A DNA stretch of 64,000 nt from Isurus oxyrinchus. Taxonomy: Eukaryota. Of this stretch, positions 15,306-44,159 are shown in pieces. Position numbers and translations under genes: made by a program. The notes under the pieces are model-generated. The model saw only the letters and a program-made list of their open reading frames with translations. It did no database searches and was not told the origin of the DNA. Location of the stretch: NCBI GenBank assembly GCA_026770705.1, contig JANJGN010000026.1, forward strand, positions 34,906,001-34,970,000. The letters run 5' to 3'. Positions within the stretch are counted from its first letter, which is position 1; every line of letters starts with the position of its first letter.

Positions 15306-15773
15306 ATGCGGCTACTCAGCATTTGGGCTGTGTGGACAGCGATTCTGACAGGTAAACGTGAAGGGAATACACTTCATCTTTTCTCTCTTTTCTCAGGCAT
15401 GTTTTCAATCAGATTTCAATAAGCTATCGGTCTTAACTTTACTGTTTTAATACATCTTTTCCAGGCGGGACTCATGGAGATTCTGTCACTCAGCCACTCT
15501 CATCAGATGTTAAGACCGAAGGCGAAGAGGTGACTTTGAAATGTAACTATGATACTACAAGTGACAGCTATACGTTATACTGGTACCGACAACACCCAGA
15601 CACACAGCCCCAGTTTGTACTGTACAAGGATAATTCTGGCAGTGAGAATAAAGCAGAATTTGCGAAAAGTCGTTTCACTGTAAAGCTCCAGATCTCCACT
15701 AAATTCACCAGTTTAACCATCTCGGGTCTGCAGCTGACTGACGCCGCCGTCTATTACTGCGCTTTCTGGGACG
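15306..15773 (+). CDS. Apparently functional TCR alpha/delta V gene segment (leader exon 15306-15351, V exon 15465-15773)
   Basis: Spliced open frame MRLLSIWAVWTAILTGGTHGDSVTQPLSSDVKTEGEEVTLKCNYDTTSDSYTLYWYRQHPDTQPQFVLYKDNSGSENKAEFAKSRFTVKLQISTKFTSLTISGLQLTDAAVYYCAFWD. GT-AG intron; Cys23, Trp41 and Cys104 present. Confidence 0.95.
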
Positions 15774-24886: not shown

Positions 24887-25359
24887 ACATTCTCCGGAAT
24901 ACTGGGGTAAGAGCGGGACAGGGGGATTCTCTCGATGTCCTGGGGCCACATTCCACCTTTAACAAACACCACCCAATGCAAACACATGCACCGACCTCCC
25001 AGTTTATCACTGTGCGGAAAGGAATGCAACAGCACAACTGGCAGAAAGAAAAGCTCCCCTCCCCCACCCCTGTACCCCAGAGTATTGTGGGAGGGGCTTT
25101 CACATCCTGATCACAATCCAAATGTAGAGTCAGAAAATTGCAGCCTCCTTTTATAAACCTATCTCTTATTCACACAGCACTTAGCCACCTATCCGGGAAC
25201 CATGCGGCCCATCAATGATCTCAGCGAAACTGCCCTGTACAAATAAACTCGATCCCCCTAAAATATTTCATTCCAGCTCTGAGGTCCGGTTTCCCAGTGC
25301 ACTCCAGGGCTGCAGTCTCCAGCTCCCCGTCATATAAACCCTCAGTTCCAGGCAGCAGA

Positions 25360-25842
25360 ATGATGGGAATCTTTCTTGCTTTCACCCTGTGTGAATGTTT
25401 ACCCCGTGAGTACCGATCAAACAAACCGACATTGTGTGGATTTAATAGTAAGCTGCCCGAGCCGATCCCAATTACAGACAATGTCTGGGGTTTAACCCCG
25501 TTCTGTGAATCTGCTCTGATGCTCCATTAAACTCACTCTGTTTAATTTCCAGGCTATTTCAGTCAGTCATTGACACAGACCTCGGCAGCGGTGACCAGGA
25601 AGGAGTGTCAGTCTCTCACCATTACCTATGTTTTCTATGGTGGTTTTTACGCTCGACATTTGACGGGCGGGGATTTCTTCAGAAAAACCCAGACCGGGAC
25701 AGAGCAGGAGCAGATCTCCAGCGGAGGAAGATTTGTTGAGACGTTGAATAAAGCACAAAAGACATTTTCGCTGGAAATTCGGGATGTGAGAGTTGAATAC
25801 ACTGCCACCTATTTCTGTAAATCTCAGTACGAGTACAAAGAA
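25360..25842 (+). pseudogene. NAR-TCR (IgNAR-like) V segment, cassette 1 (leader 25360-25405, V exon 25553-25842); open frame but canonical Cys23 replaced by Tyr
   Basis: SLTQTSAAVTRKECQSLTITYVFYGGFYARHLTGGDFFRKTQTGTEQEQISSGGRFVETLNKAQKTFSLEIRDVRVEYTATYFCKSQY. It has the VNAR-style short FR2-CDR2 (ISSGGRFVE) and a non-canonical FR1 Cys. TATA-like catataaa at ~25331. Confidence 0.9.
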
Positions 25843-25880
25843 CACGGCGACGGGTCTCGGTTTCCCGCGATATAAAAACT
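25843..25880 (+). other. Degenerate long-spacer RSS cacggcg-22-ataaaaact
   Basis: Direct read, immediately after the NAR-TCR V. Confidence 0.8.
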
Positions 25881-26209
25881 CTCACTGCAGATTATTACAG
25901 AATCAAATAAAAAAAACGGAGTTAATCTGCAGTTAAACCCCCCACGGTTCCGCCTCACACCGCCTGCCCCACAGTCTAGTGTATAATGAGACTGGATTAT
26001 TGCCGTTAACATCTTGAGTTTTATAAATGTCGAGTGTGTGCGGATGGCGATGTATTTGCCGGGATTGGTGTCAGTGAATGGGGATTGGGAATGACTAATC
26101 CCAGTTACAAACCTCTAACACCAGATGTGATCCTGGTCTAACAGCTGGAACCGGGAACCGCAGTCCCCGCTGTTTACCTAGTATACCCACAGCGCACCAA
26201 GTACCCAGG

Positions 26210-26282
26210 GGATTTCATGCTGACTTGTAACACTGCGTGTTTGGATGGGGAAGTCACAGTGGAAGAGACTTGAGCAAATATC
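26210..26282 (+). other. NAR-TCR D segment (coding 26238-26254, tgtttggatggggaagt) flanked by 12/12 RSS
   Basis: ggatttcat-12-cactgcg [D] cacagtg-12-gcaaatatc. Confidence 0.82.
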
Positions 26283-26598
26283 TCTCCACAATCACAATAT
26301 AAATTCTCCAGTCCCGGACAGTGAATTGTCGGGTTGATGTTATTGTTGCTATAATCTGGTTACATTTCATTGTAATTTCCACCATTCAGTTATCTTTCTT
26401 TAATCATTTTTCTCGGTTTATATGAAGAGAACATTTCGTTCCCGGGACCATTTACTCAGAGCTCAGGGCCTCACAAAGAACAGTTTGAACAGACAGAGAC
26501 TTTAAAATATTGAATATTGTTTATTTATTTATATCCGCTGAATAATTGGGCAGTTTCTACTGTCTGATGATGATTCCCCAGTAGTTTGAGTTGTCGGT

Positions 26599-26681
26599 GG
26601 TTGTTGTACCGGGGACACTGAGAGTGGTGTCACTGTGGTGGGTTACTAAATATTATTCTGTGGATGGACCCAGGAAAGCTG
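26599..26681 (+). pseudogene. NAR-TCR J segment (26638-26681) with 5' 23-RSS; 15-nt internal deletion
   Basis: ggttgttgt-23-cactgtg, then ...VDGPRKA|gtaat, versus VDGSGTVVTVTA in the paralogous J. Confidence 0.88.
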
Positions 26682-27399
26682 GTAATAACTCCAAACCTCG
26701 CCGGGTTACCGACTGTCCCTTGTAATGTTCACCGTCAGTTTATTATTGATATCGGTTGGGTTTGGGGGGATGTGGGAGTTGACGGAATCTGGACCATTAT
26801 TAGTTTAACGGGCACATTGGGGACAACATCAACATCTCGGACTCTCACACTTTGAATCGCTTTTAATGAGAGCAGATTGTCAGCAATCCGGACTCCACTC
26901 CCGGTGTTAATTGTGACCGAGGGAGCTCTGCCTGTCCCTTAGAGCTGGGGAGCGGGGTGACAGATCTCTCTCCTGGGTAGCAGTTTGCAGTCCGAGCTGC
27001 ACAATGTGAATGAGGAACCGGGTGAATAAACTCAACATAACTGCGGCCAGTTCGGATACCTGACCCGGGAGTAAAACAAACAAGTGACACAATGGACTTC
27101 AGATATAAGAGGTCCTGATGTGGGTCTACATGCAATTTTATTATTGGATAATCAGTGACTGAAATTAGTGACAATGCCCCCGCCATTTGTTTCAATTGTC
27201 TTCAGAAAACCAATTACTTTCCTCCCTTTCTGACCTCAGACCGAAATGTGAAAGTTTGGAACTGCAGACACTTTATTATCTTGAATGTAGATGTTTGAGA
27301 GATGGGATTGCTGTAATTTTTCTGTATCCCTGATTACTGTTAATGGAAACAACAAAATGCAGTGAGATAGTGAGGATAATGCATTAATCTTATAAAGGA

Positions 27400-28130
27400 G
27401 AACAAGAACATAGGGAGCAATTATAAACTGGGGCCATGTTCATTTAGAACCAGCAAGAAATAGATCAGCGAAAGGGGGAGAAGGATTGTATGACCTCTGG
27501 GCGCCTTCCAAAGTACAATCCGACCACGTGGTGGGTGAGCTTTATGGAGGGAAGGACTGAAATAGACTGAAATGCTGTGTAAAGTTTTGGTCTCATTACT
27601 GAAGAGAGAACCATCTGCTTTGGAAGGAGTGCAACAAAGGCTCACCAGACTGATTCCTGAGATGAAGAGGTTGTCCATTGTGAAATGATTGAATAGTCTG
27701 GGCCTGTATTCCCTAGAGTTTAGGAGAATGAGAGGTGATCTAATGAAAAAAATATAATATTCTTCAGGGACCTTGACTGGGCAGATACTGGGTCGCAGTT
27801 TCTCCAGGCTGAGGAGTATAGAACTCAGGGTCACAGCTTCAGAACGAAGGGTCATCCATTAGAACTGAGAATCGGAAAATAATCTTGAGAGGAACTATTG
27901 TTGTGAACCTGTGGCATCCTGTAACTCAGAGACCGGTGGGTGTTCAGTATCACCGTGTATGCAAGGCAATATTCGACAAATTTTTGGATACTAACAGAAT
28001 CAGGGGATATTGGGAGAAAGCGGGAATGTGATGTTGAGGTTGAAAATCAGCAACCATATTACTGAATGGCTGAGCATGTTTGAAAGGTGATCTGGCGCCT
28101 GCTGCTTCTATTCGATTCTCTACTTTGATT
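27400..28130 (+). mobile_element. CR1-type LINE 3' fragment in J-to-supporting-V intron
   Basis: ALEGVQQRLTRLIPEMK...LGLYSLEFRRMRGDL; a similar fragment sits at the equivalent position and orientation in cassette 2 (40480-41020). Confidence 0.8.
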
Positions 28131-29529
28131 TCCTACAGGCCTGAGAAAAGAAATCAGCAGCATTCCACATCTCTCTGGGAAGTTGAAGCCGGCTGGGCCT
28201 CTTTTTTCTGGACAAAAGGGAAACACTGGGAAAATAAATAGAAACCTTTCAAACAATGAGCGGTTTTAGTCTGGTGAAATTGTTTATTTGTGGCTGAGGC
28301 CAAAGCAATGGACCATCAAAATATTAACAGGGCAAAGAAGAATATTAAGACAAATAAATTTTAACAAAGACAAGTCAGAGTATGGAACTTGCTGTCCCAG
28401 GGAGTGCTTGCAGATATTACTGATATATTTACGGAACAGACCGACCCAGGGAGCTGGATGGAAATGGTCAGTTAAGTTTCGGTGGGGATTAGGTTGGAAG
28501 TGAGTCTATGCACAGGTTGAATGGCCCATTCCTCTTTTGCGTTCGTTTTCCTCCATAATGTTAAAATTGAGGGAAAACTCCGCCCAGTGAACCCGGGAAA
28601 GAATCAGTTAACGTACGGAAAGAATTGAAATTGTCAGAGCGCCGGAAGAGGCAGTTCCCAGTGAGTAACAGTAAAACCACTGCGGAAACTGAACAAACTG
28701 AACCCAACAGACAACTGAGAGAGTTTGGGACAAGTTCCCACGATTGCAAAAAGCGCAAACAGCACAAAGTAAATGTGCAAAAAGGAAATGTGAAATAAAG
28801 TAAATAAAATTAAATTAATTGTAAATATTTCAAATGAACTGAACTGCAGAAGATTGGACCCTATTGATAAAACTTAGAGAAATAGAGCACCAGGCCGAGA
28901 GAAATTCCCGAGCACTTATAAGCCACAAGAAATGATTGACCTTTGGCCACTGATGTTTGGCTTTGGCCCAATTGGTGCTGATGATTCCCATCGGTTTGTG
29001 TTGGGTCTTTCTGTGATGCCACACAGCTGTATTTCTCTCCAACAAACATTTTTTTTGTTTGGAAATCGGTTGCCTCATTGATCATAAAATATTCCCTCGG
29101 GTTTGTCTCTCACTAGGGATAATACACACAGGGATGTAATTTTATTCATAGAATTATCCGGCCCATCGTGTAGGCGCCGACGCTTTAGAAATGCAAACCA
29201 ATTGTTCCCACCGCCCATTAACTTTCCCCATCGCTCTATATTTTTATTTACATTTCCAGTACAGATCCATTACCTGCTTCAAAGTTACAATGGAATCTGT
29301 TCCCACCACCAATTCAAACGGTGCATTCTTCATGAGGAGACTTAGCTATGGAAAAAAAATCACTTCATTCCCTACTTTATCATATTTTAATAACAGTGAA
29401 TACGGTTCAAACAGGCTTCAAACCAATAAAATTACCACAAAAAGCAAAGCTATTCAAGCGATCGACAATTTCTCCTGGACAAACAGTGGATAAACAAAAA
29501 GATAATGTTCATTTTTTTTGATTCTCCAG

Positions 29530-29833
29530 ATTCCAGTTCCATAATTTCCCGGGATCCGCCTGTACAAACCTCTGTTGCTGGTGACACCATTACTTTAAAC
29601 TGAATATTCAGGGTTCTGTCCGTACACAGTACACTGGTATCGTCTGTCGCCCAGACAGGCTCCGGAATATCTGCTTCACAGACACACTTCAGGAGAGGAG
29701 AATAAAGAAAACGCAGTCGAGGGGAGAATTTCTGCTTCTATCAAATCCGTCGAGAAAATCAGCCAGTTAAAGATCTCCAAAATACAATAGAGCAACTCCG
29801 CTGTGTCTTACTGCGCACTGAGTCGGCGTGCAG
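29530..29833 (+). pseudogene. Leaderless supporting TCR-delta V of NAR-TCR, cassette 1
   Basis: DSSSIISRDPPVQTSVAGDTITLN, a 2-nt deletion at Cys23, then EYSGFCPYTVHWYR...GRISASI...IQ*SNSAVSYCALSRR. Extra CDR1 Cys (SGFC); no leader exon seen upstream. Confidence 0.9.
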
Positions 29834-29872
29834 CACAGTGATACAGTGCATGGAGAGAGCTGTAGAAAAGCC
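29834..29872 (+). other. 23-RSS cacagtg-23-agaaaagcc
   Basis: Direct read. Confidence 0.88.
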
Positions 29873-30248
29873 TGAACACGGTGGGATTACAGAAGGACCA
29901 ACAGTAGCTGAATCTCCTTCAACGCTCGTACAATAGCCTACGGGATGGTACCAACTGCTCTCAACACACAGCCCCCCTCCCTCCTCCCCACCCCGTGATG
30001 TTAACCTGGGTCCACCCGACATCACCACCCCCACAGCCTCCCGGCCCGGGACCCTTACCCCCTTTCCCATTCTGTCAGTATCGCCCTGTTTTCTCCTCCT
30101 GGATATTCAGGGATTTGTACCCTCCCCAATGCACCCAGCACCGCATAATAAAGTCACGTCCCGTGTATTCACCGGCCTGATCCATTTCCCAGACAGGGGA
30201 GCAGCTTTGCCCAGAGATGTGGAGGGGGTGGGTAACATGGATCTTGTG

Positions 30249-32790: not shown

Positions 32791-33510
32791 AGAAAGAAAA
32801 AATAGAGATAGAAGAAAGAGAAAAAGAGACATAAAAGGAGAGACAGAGAAAGAAGAAACAGAATGAGAGAGACAGAGAGAAAGGGAGAGAGAGACAGAGA
32901 GAAAGAAAGAGAGAGACAGAGGAAAAGAGACAGAGAGAGAAGATGCTCAATTGAAAGAGAGAGAAAGAAGCAGAAAGGCGGAGAAAACTATAGACATTTC
33001 CTGAAATAGACGTGCATCTGACGAATGAGGGCTTGTGGTGTGACCAGCAAGAGGGTTAGGGTGTGACAAACGGAATAATAAATTAGGTGGGTTGTCGGAT
33101 GGATAAGTTGTTGGATGAACANNNNNNNNNNNNNNNNNNNNNNNNNNNNNNNNNNNNNNNNNNNNNNNNNNNNNNNNNNNNNNNNNNNNNNNNNNNNNNN
33201 NNNNNNNNNNNNNNNNNNNNNNNNNNNNNNNNNNNNNNNNNNNNNNNNNNNNNNNNNNNNNATGGATGCATGCACAGATGGACATATGGGCGGATGGACT
33301 TATGGATGGGTGGGCGGGTGGACAGATGGACTGAAGGAAGGAGGGAGAGGTGGATGGGCGGATGGATGGATGGACGGAGAAGAGGATGGATGGATGGATG
33401 GATGAATGAAAGGGGAGATGGATAGAAGGGCGACCTGATGCATTAATGGATGGCTGGATGTGCGGGCGGATGCAAAGGGGTGAAAGTGAATGACGGCTGG
33501 ATAGATGGAT
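32790..33510 (+). repeat. GA-rich and (GGAT)n simple repeats flanking gap N 33122-33261
   Basis: Direct read. Confidence 0.9.
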
Positions 33511-37442: not shown

Positions 37443-37780
37443 TGTATTTGTACAGATGTCTCCATGCTCTGTATCACCGCGCTATGCGTCGACTCAGTGC
37501 ACAGTAATACACAGTGGAGTCACTCAGTTGTGGTTTGGAGATCATTAACTGGTTACTTTTCTCGGCCGAATTGATAGAAGCAGAAATTTTCCCCTGGCAG
37601 CGTTTTCTTTCTTCTCCTCTCCTGAAATGTGTCGCTCAAGCAGGTATTCCTGTCCTGGAGATTGACAGTACCAGTGTACTGTGTACTGACAGAACCCTGA
37701 GTATTCACAGTTTAAAGTAACGGGGTCACCGGCAGCAGAGGCTTGGAAATGCGGACTCTGGGATACCAGAGAACTGGAAT
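37443..37780 (-). pseudogene. Leaderless supporting TCR-delta V, cassette 2 (exon 37482-37780; RSS cgcggtg-23-acaaataca at 37443-37481)
   Basis: DSSSLVSQSPHFQASAAGDPVTLNCEYSGFCQYTVHWY..., a 1-nt frameshift, then ISASINSAEK...DSTVYYCALSRR. CDR1 Cys retained. Confidence 0.9.
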
Positions 37781-40479: not shown

Positions 40480-41020
40480 AGCAGTTAATATAACAAACAG
40501 AAGCACGAGCGACCATGTTACCTTTCAAAAATTTTCCGCCATTCAGTAATAGCCTGACTCATTCTCGATCTCAACATCGCTTTGGCGCAATGTCCCCATA
40601 TCCATTGATTCTTTTAGCATCCCAAAATTCATTGAACACTTCCTTTAATACACTCAACTACAGCTCCCTGAGGTAGAGAATGTCACAGATTCACAACAAT
40701 GATTTCACTGAATAAATTTCTCTTCTTCTCATTTCTCATGGCCGAATACTTACTCTGAAACTGTAACTCGTAGTTATGGACTTAACACCCTGGGGAAATA
40801 CCCACCAAGAATCTATACTGTCCTGGAAGTTAAATGTTCCAATGAAATTACATGTCATTCCTCTAAACTCTTGGGAACATAGGCCCAGGCTACTCAACCT
40901 CCTCTTACAGGACAATCCCTTTATCTCACGAATCAGGCTGATGAACCTTTGTTGCACTAGCTCCAAGACAAGGAGGTCCTTCCTTAAGTAAAGAGATCAT
41001 AACTTTACACAACATTCCAA
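40480..41020 (-). mobile_element. CR1-type LINE 3' fragment
   Basis: ELVQQRFISLIREIKGLSCKRRLSSLGLCSQEFR. Confidence 0.75.
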
Positions 41021-41928
41021 ACTGGAGTCCATTTCAGTCATTCCTCCATGCACCTCACCAACTAACATGGGCTCGGATTGTAATTTGAATGGGCCAGAGA
41101 TCCTCCAATCCTTCTCTCTCTTTCGATTAATTATTTCTTACTGCTTCGAAATGAACATTCCCCCAGATTGTCAATGTTTCTTAAGGTCCCTGTTCTCCTT
41201 TATAAGATTAATACACAATCCTCAGTCTCTCAGTGCGCTGTGCTGTTTTAATTAACAGTAATCAGGGACACAGATAAATTACAGCAATCCCATTTCTCAA
41301 ACATTTACATTCAATATAGAGAAATGTCTGCAATTCCAAACCTGCACATCTGACAGCGGAAAAGGAGGAAATTGATTGGTTATATGATGGCAATTGAGAG
41401 AAGTGGCGGGGTCAATATCACTAATTTTAGTCACTGGTTGCCCAATCATAAAATTCCATCTGGACCCACATCAGGGTCTTATATCTGAAGTCCCTTGTGT
41501 CACTCTCCCATTTCTCTCCTGCGTCAGGTATTGAACGAGCCGCTGCAGGTATATGAACTGGCCATAGTTGTGTTGAGTTTATTCACTCGGTACCTCATTC
41601 ACATTGCTCAGGTCGGACTGCAATCTGCTGCCCAGTAGAGAGATCTATGACCTCGCTTCCGGGCTCTAAGGGACAGACAGAGAGCCCTCGGTCACAGTTA
41701 ACACCAGGAGTGGAGTCCGGATTGTCGACAATCTGCTCTCATTAAAAACGATTCAGAGTGTGAGTGTCCGTGATGTTGATGTTGTCCCCGATGTGCCCAT
41801 TAAACCAATAATGGTCCAGATTCTGTCAACTCCCACATCTCACCCAAACTCCACTGATATCAATAATAAACTGACGGTGAACATTACCCGAGACAGGCTG
41901 TAACCCGGCGGGGTTTGGAGTCACTTAC

Positions 41929-42020
41929 CGGCTGTGACAGTCACCACCGTCCCGGATCCATCCACATAATCTTATTTTCAGCACAGTGATCCCGCTCTCA
42001 GTCTCTCCGGTACAACAATC
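41929..42020 (-). other. NAR-TCR J segment (coding 41929-41981), intact-looking, with 23-RSS (41982-42020)
   Basis: gattgttgt-23-cactgtg, then DYVDGSGTVVTVTA + g|gtaagt. Confidence 0.9.
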
Positions 42021-42333
42021 ATTGACACCTCAAACTGCAGGGAAATCATCATCAGACAGTAGAAACTGCCCAGTTATTGAGCGGATTAAAATAAGTGTAA
42101 AATATTCAATGTTTCGAAGCTTCTGTCGGTTCAAACTGTTCTTTGTGAGGCCCTGAGCTCTGAGTAAATGGCCCCGGGAAGGAGATGTTTGCTTCATATA
42201 AACCGAGAAATTATCAAAGAAAGATAACTGAATGGTGGAAATTACAAGAAATATAACCAGATTACAGTGATAATAACATCAACCCGACAATTTCCTATCC
42301 GGGCCCAGAGAATTTAAACAGTGATCATACAGA

Positions 42334-42844
42334 GATATTTGATCCGGTCTGCCCCACTCTGACTGTACCGCATGCTGTACATATACAGAGCATTACAGTA
42401 ATAGGTGGTGCTGTTTCCAACTCTCAGATCCCTAATTTCCAGCGAAAATGTATTTTCTGCTTTATTCACCGACACAACAAATCTCCCCTCGCTGGAGATC
42501 CGCTCCCGGTCTGGGTTTGTCTGAAGAAATCCCCACCCGTCAAAGGACGAGAGAAAAAGCCACCATAGAAAACGCAGGTGATGGTGAGAGACTGACGCTC
42601 CTTCCTGGTCACCGCTGCCGGGGTCTGTACCACTGACTGACTGAAAGACCCTGAAAATTAAACAGAGAGAGTTTAATGGACCATCAGAGCCGAACCACAG
42701 AGCGGGGTCAAAACTCCGGACATTGTCTGGAATTGGGATGGACTCGGGCAGCTTTGTATTAAACAAACACAATGTCGGTTTGCTTGATCGGTACTCACGG
42801 GGTAAACAGACACACAGGGTGAAAAGAAAGAGAATTCCAATCGT
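42334..42844 (-). pseudogene. NAR-TCR V(D) segment, cassette 2: leader 42799-42844 (ATG lost), V-D exon 42362-42650, followed directly by the D-type 12-RSS (42334-42361)
   Basis: SVVQTPAAVTRKERQSLTITCVFYGGFFSRPLTGGDFFRQTQTG, a 10-nt deletion, then ISSEGRFVVSVNKAENTFSLEIRDLRVGNSTTYYCNALYMYSMRYS + cagagtg-12-tcaaatatc. Confidence 0.9.
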
Positions 42845-44159
42845 TCTGCTGCCTGGAGCTGAGGGTTTATATGACGGGGAGCTGGAGACTGTCGGCCCGG
42901 ACTGCACTGGGAGACAGGACCTCAGAGCTGGACCAAAATATTTAAGTGGGTGCTGAGTTGATTTGCACAGGACAGTTCCGCTCTGATCATTGACGGGCCG
43001 CACGGTTCCCGGGTCGCTGGCTAAGTCTGTGACTAAGAGACAGGTTTATAAAAGGAGACTGCAATTTTTTGACTCTTCATTTGGATTGTGATCCGGATGT
43101 GAAAAGTCCTCCTGCAATATTCTGGGGTACAGAGGTGGGGGAGGGGAGCTTTTCTTTCTGCTAGTTACGCTGCCGCCTTCAAATCCCCGCAATAATGAAC
43201 TGGGAGGTCGGTGCGTGTGTTTGTATCGGGTGGTTTTTGAGAGATGGCGCTTCCCGTCAGTCCCTCAGCCTGACCAGTAAAGCCAATGAGTTCGAGGGGC
43301 TGAACGGTGACCCGGCACTACACCAAGGAGGCAGGAACACCCGGGAGACTTCAATCCAACGAACCTTCAGTTAATCCCACACAAATGGGTTTGCAAGACA
43401 GCATTACCTGGCGCATTCATATGCAGCACTTTAGTGCGACATCTGTCACTTCATCAGCTGCATCAAGGGGCTTTGGACACAAATCTAAATATTCACTCAA
43501 ACACAAATGACAGGTCTGTGAAACATACAAATGCAGCACAAAGGAGCCACCCTCAGTCATAGAAACACATGTGGATTTTATTTTGATCCATCATCTGGTC
43601 CAACAAATTTGCCTCATATTTCCTTTCCATTCCCGTGCAGTTTTTCTCTACAGCGCTGTCCCCATGGCCTCTGATCACGATGAAACTACATTTATTGATT
43701 GACTTTAAGTCCGATATAAATGCGAAAACTCCAAAGCAACTTTCACGACGCCTGGAGGTGTTTAGGCGTCAGTGCTTGCTCACCGATTTGTCCTATTCTG
43801 TCTTCACTCCCAATTTAACGTATTTATTTCCACGTGTTTTACTGCGGTGGGAGTGTTTACTTCGAGGAGAGATTTACCCAGCAGAGAGACATCAAGGCAA
43901 AGGGACAGACAAGCTAAGAAGGTCAGAGCGAGGGAGGGGGAACCACCCAGTGAATTAAACTATCCGCAGCTCACATTCATTGGTGCGTTGCTGTCATCAG
44001 CTCGGACAGACAAGTGAATCTTCTCCTTGGGAAACGCCCCTCTCTGCCTCAATAAGTGGAGCCCGATCCTGTTCTGGGTTTCACTTTAATATCAGACTAG
44101 AGGGACCAACATATTAAGAAGAACCTGTGATTTTTTTGTCGAGCTCGAAACCAGATACC

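Follow-up and report, generated by a model that had tools for sequence, protein, structure and literature searches.

Introduction

The IgNAR type III gene, in which D1 and D2 are joined in the germline, is an expressed functional Ig gene with a developmental role. Germline joining has so far been seen as something peculiar to cartilaginous fish and their cluster-type Ig loci. In the excerpts of PMC4279169 used here, the partly (VD-J) or fully joined Ig clusters of these animals are attributed to RAG expression in germ cells, and the germline joins of shark Ig genes are described as possible because the V, D and J lie within about 1-2 kb. The same excerpts describe the fully joined IgM1gj of nurse shark as an expressed functional germline-joined Ig with a developmental role. 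Among the TCRs, marsupial TCR-mu has a germline-joined V, V-mu-j, in a TCR chain with two V domains, and the joined state is ascribed to germline V(D)J recombination in the excerpted part of PMC3457774. The doubly rearranging NAR-TcR of sharks has two V domains as well, and both of them need full V-D-J rearrangement (Criscitiello et al. 2006, as related in portions of PMC1845163 and PMC5931798).

Here we describe a NAR-TCR cassette, hereafter cassette 2, that carries an inherited V-D joint. The closest known system is that of the partly joined VD-J Ig heavy-chain clusters of sharks and skates, followed by IgNAR type III and IgM1gj and, among the TCRs, by TCR-mu. As in the VD-J clusters, the V-D joint of cassette 2 is inherited, the J is still unrearranged, and neither the D 3' RSS nor the leader intron has been lost. 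Unlike the VD-J clusters, which have their own constant exons, cassette 2 sits among TCR alpha/delta V segments, its J splices to a second, rearranging V-delta, and the cassette is a pseudogene. With IgNAR type III and IgM1gj it has in common the NAR V lineage or the same CDR3-restricting phenomenon, whereas the join in cassette 2 is a V-D join, is linked to a TCR and is dead. Like V-mu-j, the joined V of cassette 2 belongs to a TCR chain of two V domains and was joined in the germline. In TCR-mu, however, it is the membrane-proximal supporting V that is joined, fully and without introns, which points to retrotransposition; in cassette 2 it is the membrane-distal NAR V, only the V and the D are joined and the leader intron is intact. 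In comparison with canonical NAR-TcR, the first rearrangement step is already germline in cassette 2. The cassette is a NAR-TCR addition to the germline-joined antigen-receptor genes of cartilaginous fish already known from Ig. We found no description of a germline-joined NAR-TCR in the full-text literature searched; key NAR-TCR papers lie outside the coverage of that literature, and a prior description is possible.

Results

Two NAR-TCR cassettes in the window

The window, by which we mean the whole stretch of 64 kb that was analysed, contains two NAR-TCR cassettes in a tail-to-tail inverted duplication. The two arms, 24963-29891 (+) and 43239-37423 (-), are 73-88% identical. Cassette 1 lies on the + strand (25360-26681), and cassette 2, its inverted paralogue, on the - strand (42844-41929). 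A tblastn search of the window with the V exon of cassette 1 as the query found these two NAR-type V exons and no others. Each arm follows the same plan: a leader exon, an intron, a NAR-type V and a J with a gtaagt donor are followed, 3-4 kb past the J, by a leaderless supporting V-delta that starts at a splice acceptor and carries a CDR1 Cys (Table 1). Near the symmetry centre of the duplication (~33650) there is a run of N (33122-33261), which is either an assembly gap or a masked run, and the linkage of the arms across this run is putative. Judged from their divergence, collapsed haplotypes are ruled out as the source of the two arms.

Table 1. Elements of the two NAR-TCR cassettes and their positions in the window.
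Element	Position	Strand	Details
Cassette 1, leader exon	25360..25405	+	ATG ATG present
Cassette 1, NAR-TCR V exon	25552..25842	+	unjoined; open frame; Cys23 replaced by Tyr
Cassette 1, V RSS	25843-25880	+	heptamer CACGGCG (25843-25849), 22-nt spacer, nonamer ATAAAAACT (25872-25880)
Cassette 1, V-D interval			329 bp between V RSS and D 5' RSS
Cassette 1, D 5' 12-RSS	26210-26237	+	GGATTTCAT, 12-nt spacer, CACTGCG
Cassette 1, signal-to-signal segment	25843..26237	+	395 bp; V RSS, V-D interval and D 5' 12-RSS
Cassette 1, D	26238..26254	+	17 nt
Cassette 1, D 3' 12-RSS	26255..26282	+	CACAGTG, 12-nt spacer, GCAAATATC
Cassette 1, D-J interval	26283-26598	+	316 bp
Cassette 1, J 23-RSS	26599-26637	+	GGTTGTTGT, 23-nt spacer, CACTGTG
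Cassette 1, J remnant	26638-26681	+	GTVVTV core gone by a 16-nt deletion
Cassette 1, supporting V-delta	29530..29833	+	leaderless; 2-nt deletion at Cys23 codon; in-frame TAG; 23-RSS at 29834-29872
Cassette 2, leader exon remnant	42799..42844	-	ACG ATT (42844-42839) replaces both ATG; gtgagt donor from 42798
Cassette 2, leader-V intron	42798-42651	-	retained
Cassette 2, VD exon	42362..42650	-	NAR-TCR V and coding sequence D-derived by position
Cassette 2, Cys104 codon and VD coding joint	42362..42397	-	TGT (42397-42395) and 33-nt joint CNALYMYSMRYS
Cassette 2, D-type 3' 12-RSS	42334..42361	-	abuts VD exon; CAGAGTG (42361-42355), 12-nt spacer, TCAAATATC (42342-42334)
Cassette 2, D-J interval	42021..42333	-	colinear with cassette 1 26283-26598
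Cassette 2, J 23-RSS	41982..42020	-	GATTGTTGT, 23-nt spacer, CACTGTG
Cassette 2, J	41929..41981	-	..YVDGSGTVVTVTA, gtaagt donor; in-frame TGA and TAA in 5' part
Cassette 2, supporting V-delta	37482..37780	-	leaderless; CDR1 Cys; 1-nt frameshift; degenerate heptamer CGCGGTG (37481-37475)

The closest database matches in a protein search were two-V gene models of ~230 aa from Cetorhinus maximus, Carcharodon carcharias, Mustelus asterias and Scyliorhinus canicula, with E values of 1e-15 to 1e-13 and 71-76% identity over the V pieces; these best hits point to a lamniform or related galeomorph shark. In a multiple alignment, the family blocks AAVTRKECQSLTITC and ERISSGGRFVVSVNKAEKTFSLEIRD were conserved with other cartilaginous-fish NAR-TcR V sequences. 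[quoted passage not shown] Cassette 1 shows all of these traits, namely a hydrophobic leader with ATG ATG, the a-b Cys in RKECQSL and DFFRK without Trp. The corresponding positions of cassette 2 read DFFRQ, a CGT (Arg) codon in place of the a-b Cys, which is a lesion of the pseudogene, and ACG ATT in the leader exon, which is recognisable by homology but non-functional in this copy. The own J with a splice donor is present (..DGSGTVVTVTA directly before gtaagt, at 41981-41929), and so is the leaderless V-delta with a CDR1 Cys, the motif being SGFCQYTVHWY in 37780-37482 (-) and SGFCPYTVHWY in 29530-29833 (+); both of these supporting Vs are frameshifted. With its leader, its a-b Cys, the missing Trp, its own D and J and its leaderless V-delta with the CDR1 Cys, cassette 1 is like canonical NAR-TcR. 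On these sequence features, the assignment of both V exons to the NAR-TcR V family is firm.

The V-D junction of cassette 2

Cassette 1 is a split unit, in which the V, a 23-type RSS (22-nt spacer), a 12-RSS, a 17-nt D, another 12-RSS, a 23-RSS and the J follow one another. A first-pass annotation of this DNA had reported that in cassette 2 the V runs straight into the D-type 3' RSS, and all the elements, coordinates and counts that it listed were confirmed in our analysis. The 12-RSS abutting the VD exon of cassette 2 is homologous to the D 3' 12-RSS of cassette 1, with the CAC of the heptamer mutated to CAG. A MAFFT alignment of the two cassettes opened a block of 403 gap columns in cassette 2, which begins after the GTACA close to the V end and reaches to the D region. 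The homology ends at GTACA (~42376 in cassette 2), 5 nt short of the V coding end, and restarts with the opening base of the D 3' heptamer. Where the 17-nt D would be expected, cassette 2 has 13-14 nt that cannot be aligned. The same alignment bears out the earlier statement that the missing piece is the 395-bp signal-to-signal segment. From Cys104 to the heptamer there are 36 nt in cassette 2, versus 27 + 17 = 44 nt for an untrimmed V and D, so that the net loss of coding ends at the joint is 8 nt.

The coding ends are thus kept to a few nt in cassette 2, which has lost the V RSS and the D 5' RSS together with all the intervening DNA. The removed pair of RSSs, as read from the paralogue, consists of the V RSS with its 22-nt spacer (23-type) and the D 5' RSS with its 12-nt spacer, which is a legal 12/23 pair. 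The pair retained in cassette 2 is a 12-RSS (42361-42334) and a 23-RSS (42020-41982). Cassette 2 has also kept its leader intron and its D-J interval, both colinear with cassette 1, and its J donor. The identity between the cassettes is 86.6% in the V exon, 86-87% in the introns, 85.7% in the D-J interval, 82% in the J RSS and 74% in the J. With an intact leader intron and D-J interval, the change was a DNA-level event and not the return of a retrotransposed RNA copy.

The last 13 nt of the VD exon are inferred to be D-derived by their position. Their similarity to the D of cassette 1 is not significant, and the global alignment of this part to the V end plus D is ambiguous. The earlier description of the joint as ending in a D-like sequence agrees with the position of these nt, which fits a D, and is not demonstrable by similarity. 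The VD joint behind the proposed Tyr-rich, hard-wired CDR3 does exist, and this label describes a pseudogene with drifted sequence. A palindrome, GCATGC (42375-42370, -), lies at the presumed V-D coding joint. It fits P nucleotides and is weakly suggestive; a 6-nt palindrome is expected by chance within the junction at ~15%. P and N nucleotides are not scorable at the joint because the junction has drifted.

Polarity of the change

An ORF of Chiloscyllium punctatum (P0015) reads from the V end across a whole RSS, made up of a heptamer, a 22/23-nt spacer and a nonamer, into the flank, and it aligns without gaps to 25669-25908 of cassette 1 (..YTHSDRPRLPVAQKLSLEVITETN versus ..YKEHGDGSRFPAI, a stop and KLSLQIITESN). 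In three other shark V ORFs (P0012, P0013 and P0014), the heptamer comes directly after YYC.AQY... According to the excerpts of PMC1845163 and PMC5931798, NAR-TcR V domains are made by V-D-J rearrangement. Because P0015 aligns through the V RSS without gaps, the split V-RSS state is ancestral, and cassette 2, on this sequence comparison, is derived by a deletion. Conservation in position and length with the bamboo shark covers the V 23-type RSS and extends ~30 nt into the 3' flank (25843-25908; KLSL.IITE.N), which is unusually deep for a non-coding flank.

The junction in other samples

The presence of the junction was examined in Logan contigs of six runs (X1-X6) over 41000-43500 of the window; such contigs report presence and not the share of cells. 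In run X5, which comes from another sample and study with the same species label, contig 22 spans 42334-42495 with 4 mismatches and no gaps, reaching from the nonamer across the RSS and the entire joint into FR3, and contig 21 spans 42223-42355, extending into the D-J interval. In run X6, which carries another species label, contig 30 spans 42218-42463 with 7 mismatches and no gaps. The depths of the junction contigs resemble those of their neighbours (2-3.8 versus 3-6 in X5, and 6.3 versus 5.5-8.6 in X6). The two runs have in common two substitutions, at 42392 and 42411, that are not in the window, so that these contigs do not represent the window's own DNA. Somatic V-D joints are clone-specific, and the same 36-nt joint is found in three sources; the joint must therefore be inherited. 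We conclude that the V-D junction is inherited and is neither a somatic rearrangement nor a misassembly. The V-D join is later than the inverted duplication and earlier than the divergence of the two species labels that carry the junction, as can be seen directly.

With a divergence of 2.5-3% from the window, the contigs of X5 and X6 may belong to a close paralogue of this locus, in which case the joined form is still present in other animals. The contig depths (2-6 in a 142-Mb run with adapter read-through, and 80-100 in 3.7-Gb runs) are unlike those of plain whole-genome shotgun sequencing, so that RNA or enriched libraries are possible sources of these runs. In the case of RNA, the V exon, the RSS and the D-J interval of the dead cassette would be transcribed as a single unspliced stretch.

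Decay of cassette 2

The first-pass annotation had regarded the joined copy as dead because of the missing ATG and a 10-nt deletion. Both lesions were found, the former as ACG ATT and the latter as a frameshift near 42506, and the verdict holds with further damage in the RSS heptamer, the J and the supporting V-delta. The a-b Cys has changed to Arg and the heptamer begins with CAG. The CAC of an RSS heptamer is essential. The 5' part of the J contains TGA and TAA, and the supporting V-delta has a 1-nt frameshift and the heptamer CGCGGTG. The cassette 2 unit thus reads as a pseudogene in every part and not as a working receptor gene. Cassette 1 is probably dead as well, despite its open V frame and its ATG, as suggested by the replacement of Cys23 by Tyr (TAT) and the deleted core of the J.

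The V exon shows no greater conservation between the copies than the introns do (86.6% versus 86-87%), and the codon differences in the V are 23 non-synonymous versus 7 synonymous. These facts indicate that the copies have evolved neutrally for most of the time since the duplication.

Discussion

The junction of cassette 2 is most probably a V-to-D coding joint that was made by a RAG-type 12/23 recombination and became fixed in the germline, with the action of RAG read from the geometry of the breakpoints. The first-pass annotation had proposed that the process known from Ig clusters joined V and D in a NAR-TCR cassette in the germline, and this proposal is supported by the breakpoints at the coding ends, the legal RSS pair and the shared junction. 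By analogy with the known germline joining of shark Ig genes, cleavage would have taken place at the V 23-type RSS and the D 5' 12-RSS, and the signal-ended segment of ~395 bp would have been lost. The two coding ends would then have been processed, with a net loss of 8 nt, and ligated. This would have left the VD exon abutting the D 3' 12-RSS and facing the J 23-RSS ~340 bp away. A VD-J gene of this type would need one more join only, and its CDR3 would be partly fixed.

There are other possible interpretations of the junction. A RAG-independent germline deletion of ~400 bp, by replication slippage or by the repair of a random break, may by coincidence have taken out the V RSS and the D 5' RSS along with the V-D interval. 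Both cassettes are decaying and have suffered other small deletions (10 nt in the V of cassette 2, 16 nt in the J of cassette 1 and 1-2 nt in the supporting Vs), and the D-derived part of the joint is not provable by similarity. The remaining deletions, however, are of 1-16 nt and not of ~400 nt, and both breakpoints lie within a few nt of the coding ends; by our own rough estimate, breakpoints placed at random within +/-200 nt would do so with a chance of ~6e-4 (<1e-3). Breakpoints away from the coding ends at a microhomology, which the first-pass annotation had named as evidence against a RAG-type join, were not what we found at this junction: they lie at the coding ends, and there is no usable microhomology at the two boundaries by which a RAG-independent deletion could be explained. 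The only 5-mer shared by the boundaries is AACAC, which holds the CAC of both heptamers. A microhomology deletion via AACAC was rejected, since the D 5' heptamer would stay in such a deletion, yet it is absent. We therefore regard a RAG-independent deletion as improbable. Slightly less probable again is that the join arose in a different NAR-TCR cassette, VD-joined in the germline, and was copied into cassette 2 by gene conversion or unequal recombination. The 2.5-3% difference of the X5 and X6 contigs from the window, which could mark a paralogue, would agree with such a donor, but the identity to cassette 1 is even across the junction (86.6% in the V and 85.7% in the D-J interval), without the step of a conversion tract. 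Moreover, the copying would still require a RAG-type germline join somewhere.

The tissue of the assembly is not on record, and the N gap at 33122-33261 lies near the centre of the duplication; a somatic V-D rearrangement of a lymphocyte, or a misassembly, in the reference might be considered for these reasons. This explanation is effectively refuted by the identical 36-nt junction in two other samples, one of them with another species label, each with substitutions of its own, and we give it almost no weight. Decay of the germline type is also seen on every element of cassette 2, and arms that are 73-88% identical are not collapsed haplotypes. It is just as implausible that cassette 2 is ancestrally D-less and that cassette 1 gained a 395-bp insert flanked by RSSs, for example by RAG-mediated transposition of a signal-ended fragment. 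The segment does have inward-facing signal ends at both borders, as an inserted signal-ended fragment would. An insertion is, however, contradicted by P0015 of Chiloscyllium punctatum, which has the V 23-RSS and its 3' flank at the same position and with the same length, and it disagrees with P0012, P0013 and P0014, which end in a heptamer just after YYC.AQY.., and with the published origin of NAR-TcR V domains by V-D-J rearrangement (PMC1845163, in part).

On the reading of the junction as a RAG-type join, cassette 2 is probably a fossil left by RAG acting in the germline on a cassette linked to TCR-delta, RAG again being deduced from where the breakpoints fall. It would extend to a TCR-linked gene the process of germline joining hitherto associated with Ig clusters, and would provide a dated trace of RAG at work in germ cells. 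That such a gene was reached is likely due to the V-D-J unit of NAR-TCR being a miniature cluster, from which a germline join removes nothing else. A passage of PMC12227049 presents the view that the Ig and TCR genes of the shark antigen-receptor complex share mechanisms, and the joint of cassette 2 supports this view as given there. The functional interest of cassette 2 itself is limited because this copy is a pseudogene without present function.

Gene models of other sharks bear on how general such joins may be. In ten RefSeq models (P0001-P0010) of Cetorhinus, Carcharodon, Mustelus and Scyliorhinus, a leader, a NAR V, a CDR3, a J and a supporting V are contained in ~230 aa, and the models end by reading into the heptamer of the supporting V. 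Paralogous loci have common CDR3 motifs, AVSLWW[DE]T in 3 Cetorhinus loci and [DG]TREYD in 2 Mustelus loci. These predicted models suggest that several shark species have NAR VDJ exons that are fully joined in the germline. When the read-through ORF of cassette 2 was used as the query of a protein search, in a database with few shark ORFs, no orthologue with the same CDR3 was obtained, and a protein search with P0011 in such a database gave 7 candidates only. We tentatively propose, at somewhat less than even chances, that the NAR-TCR cassettes of galeomorph sharks have been hit repeatedly by germline RAG, the reason being that each of them forms a compact, Ig-cluster-like V-D-J unit in the TCR-delta region. 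The hits would have given a graded series of split, VD-J and fully VDJ-joined cassettes, some of which would be intact and encode semi-invariant, innate-like chains, with cassette 2 as a decayed member. If intact relatives exist, as the RefSeq models suggest, one would expect NAR-TCR chains whose binding loop is hard-wired in part or in full.

Two further observations concern the surroundings of the cassettes. The best-conserved part of the cassettes is a stretch of ~55 bp upstream of the leader exon (25304-25359 and 42900-42845, with CATATAAACCC), which is 91% identical versus ~86% elsewhere, and it may be a candidate promoter element. [quoted passage not shown] Those near 10.4 kb and 44.5 kb have a frameshift or stop codons, and the V ending near 15760 looks intact, with ..LTDAAVYYCAFWDA followed by CACAGTG, a 23-nt spacer and ACAAAAACT.
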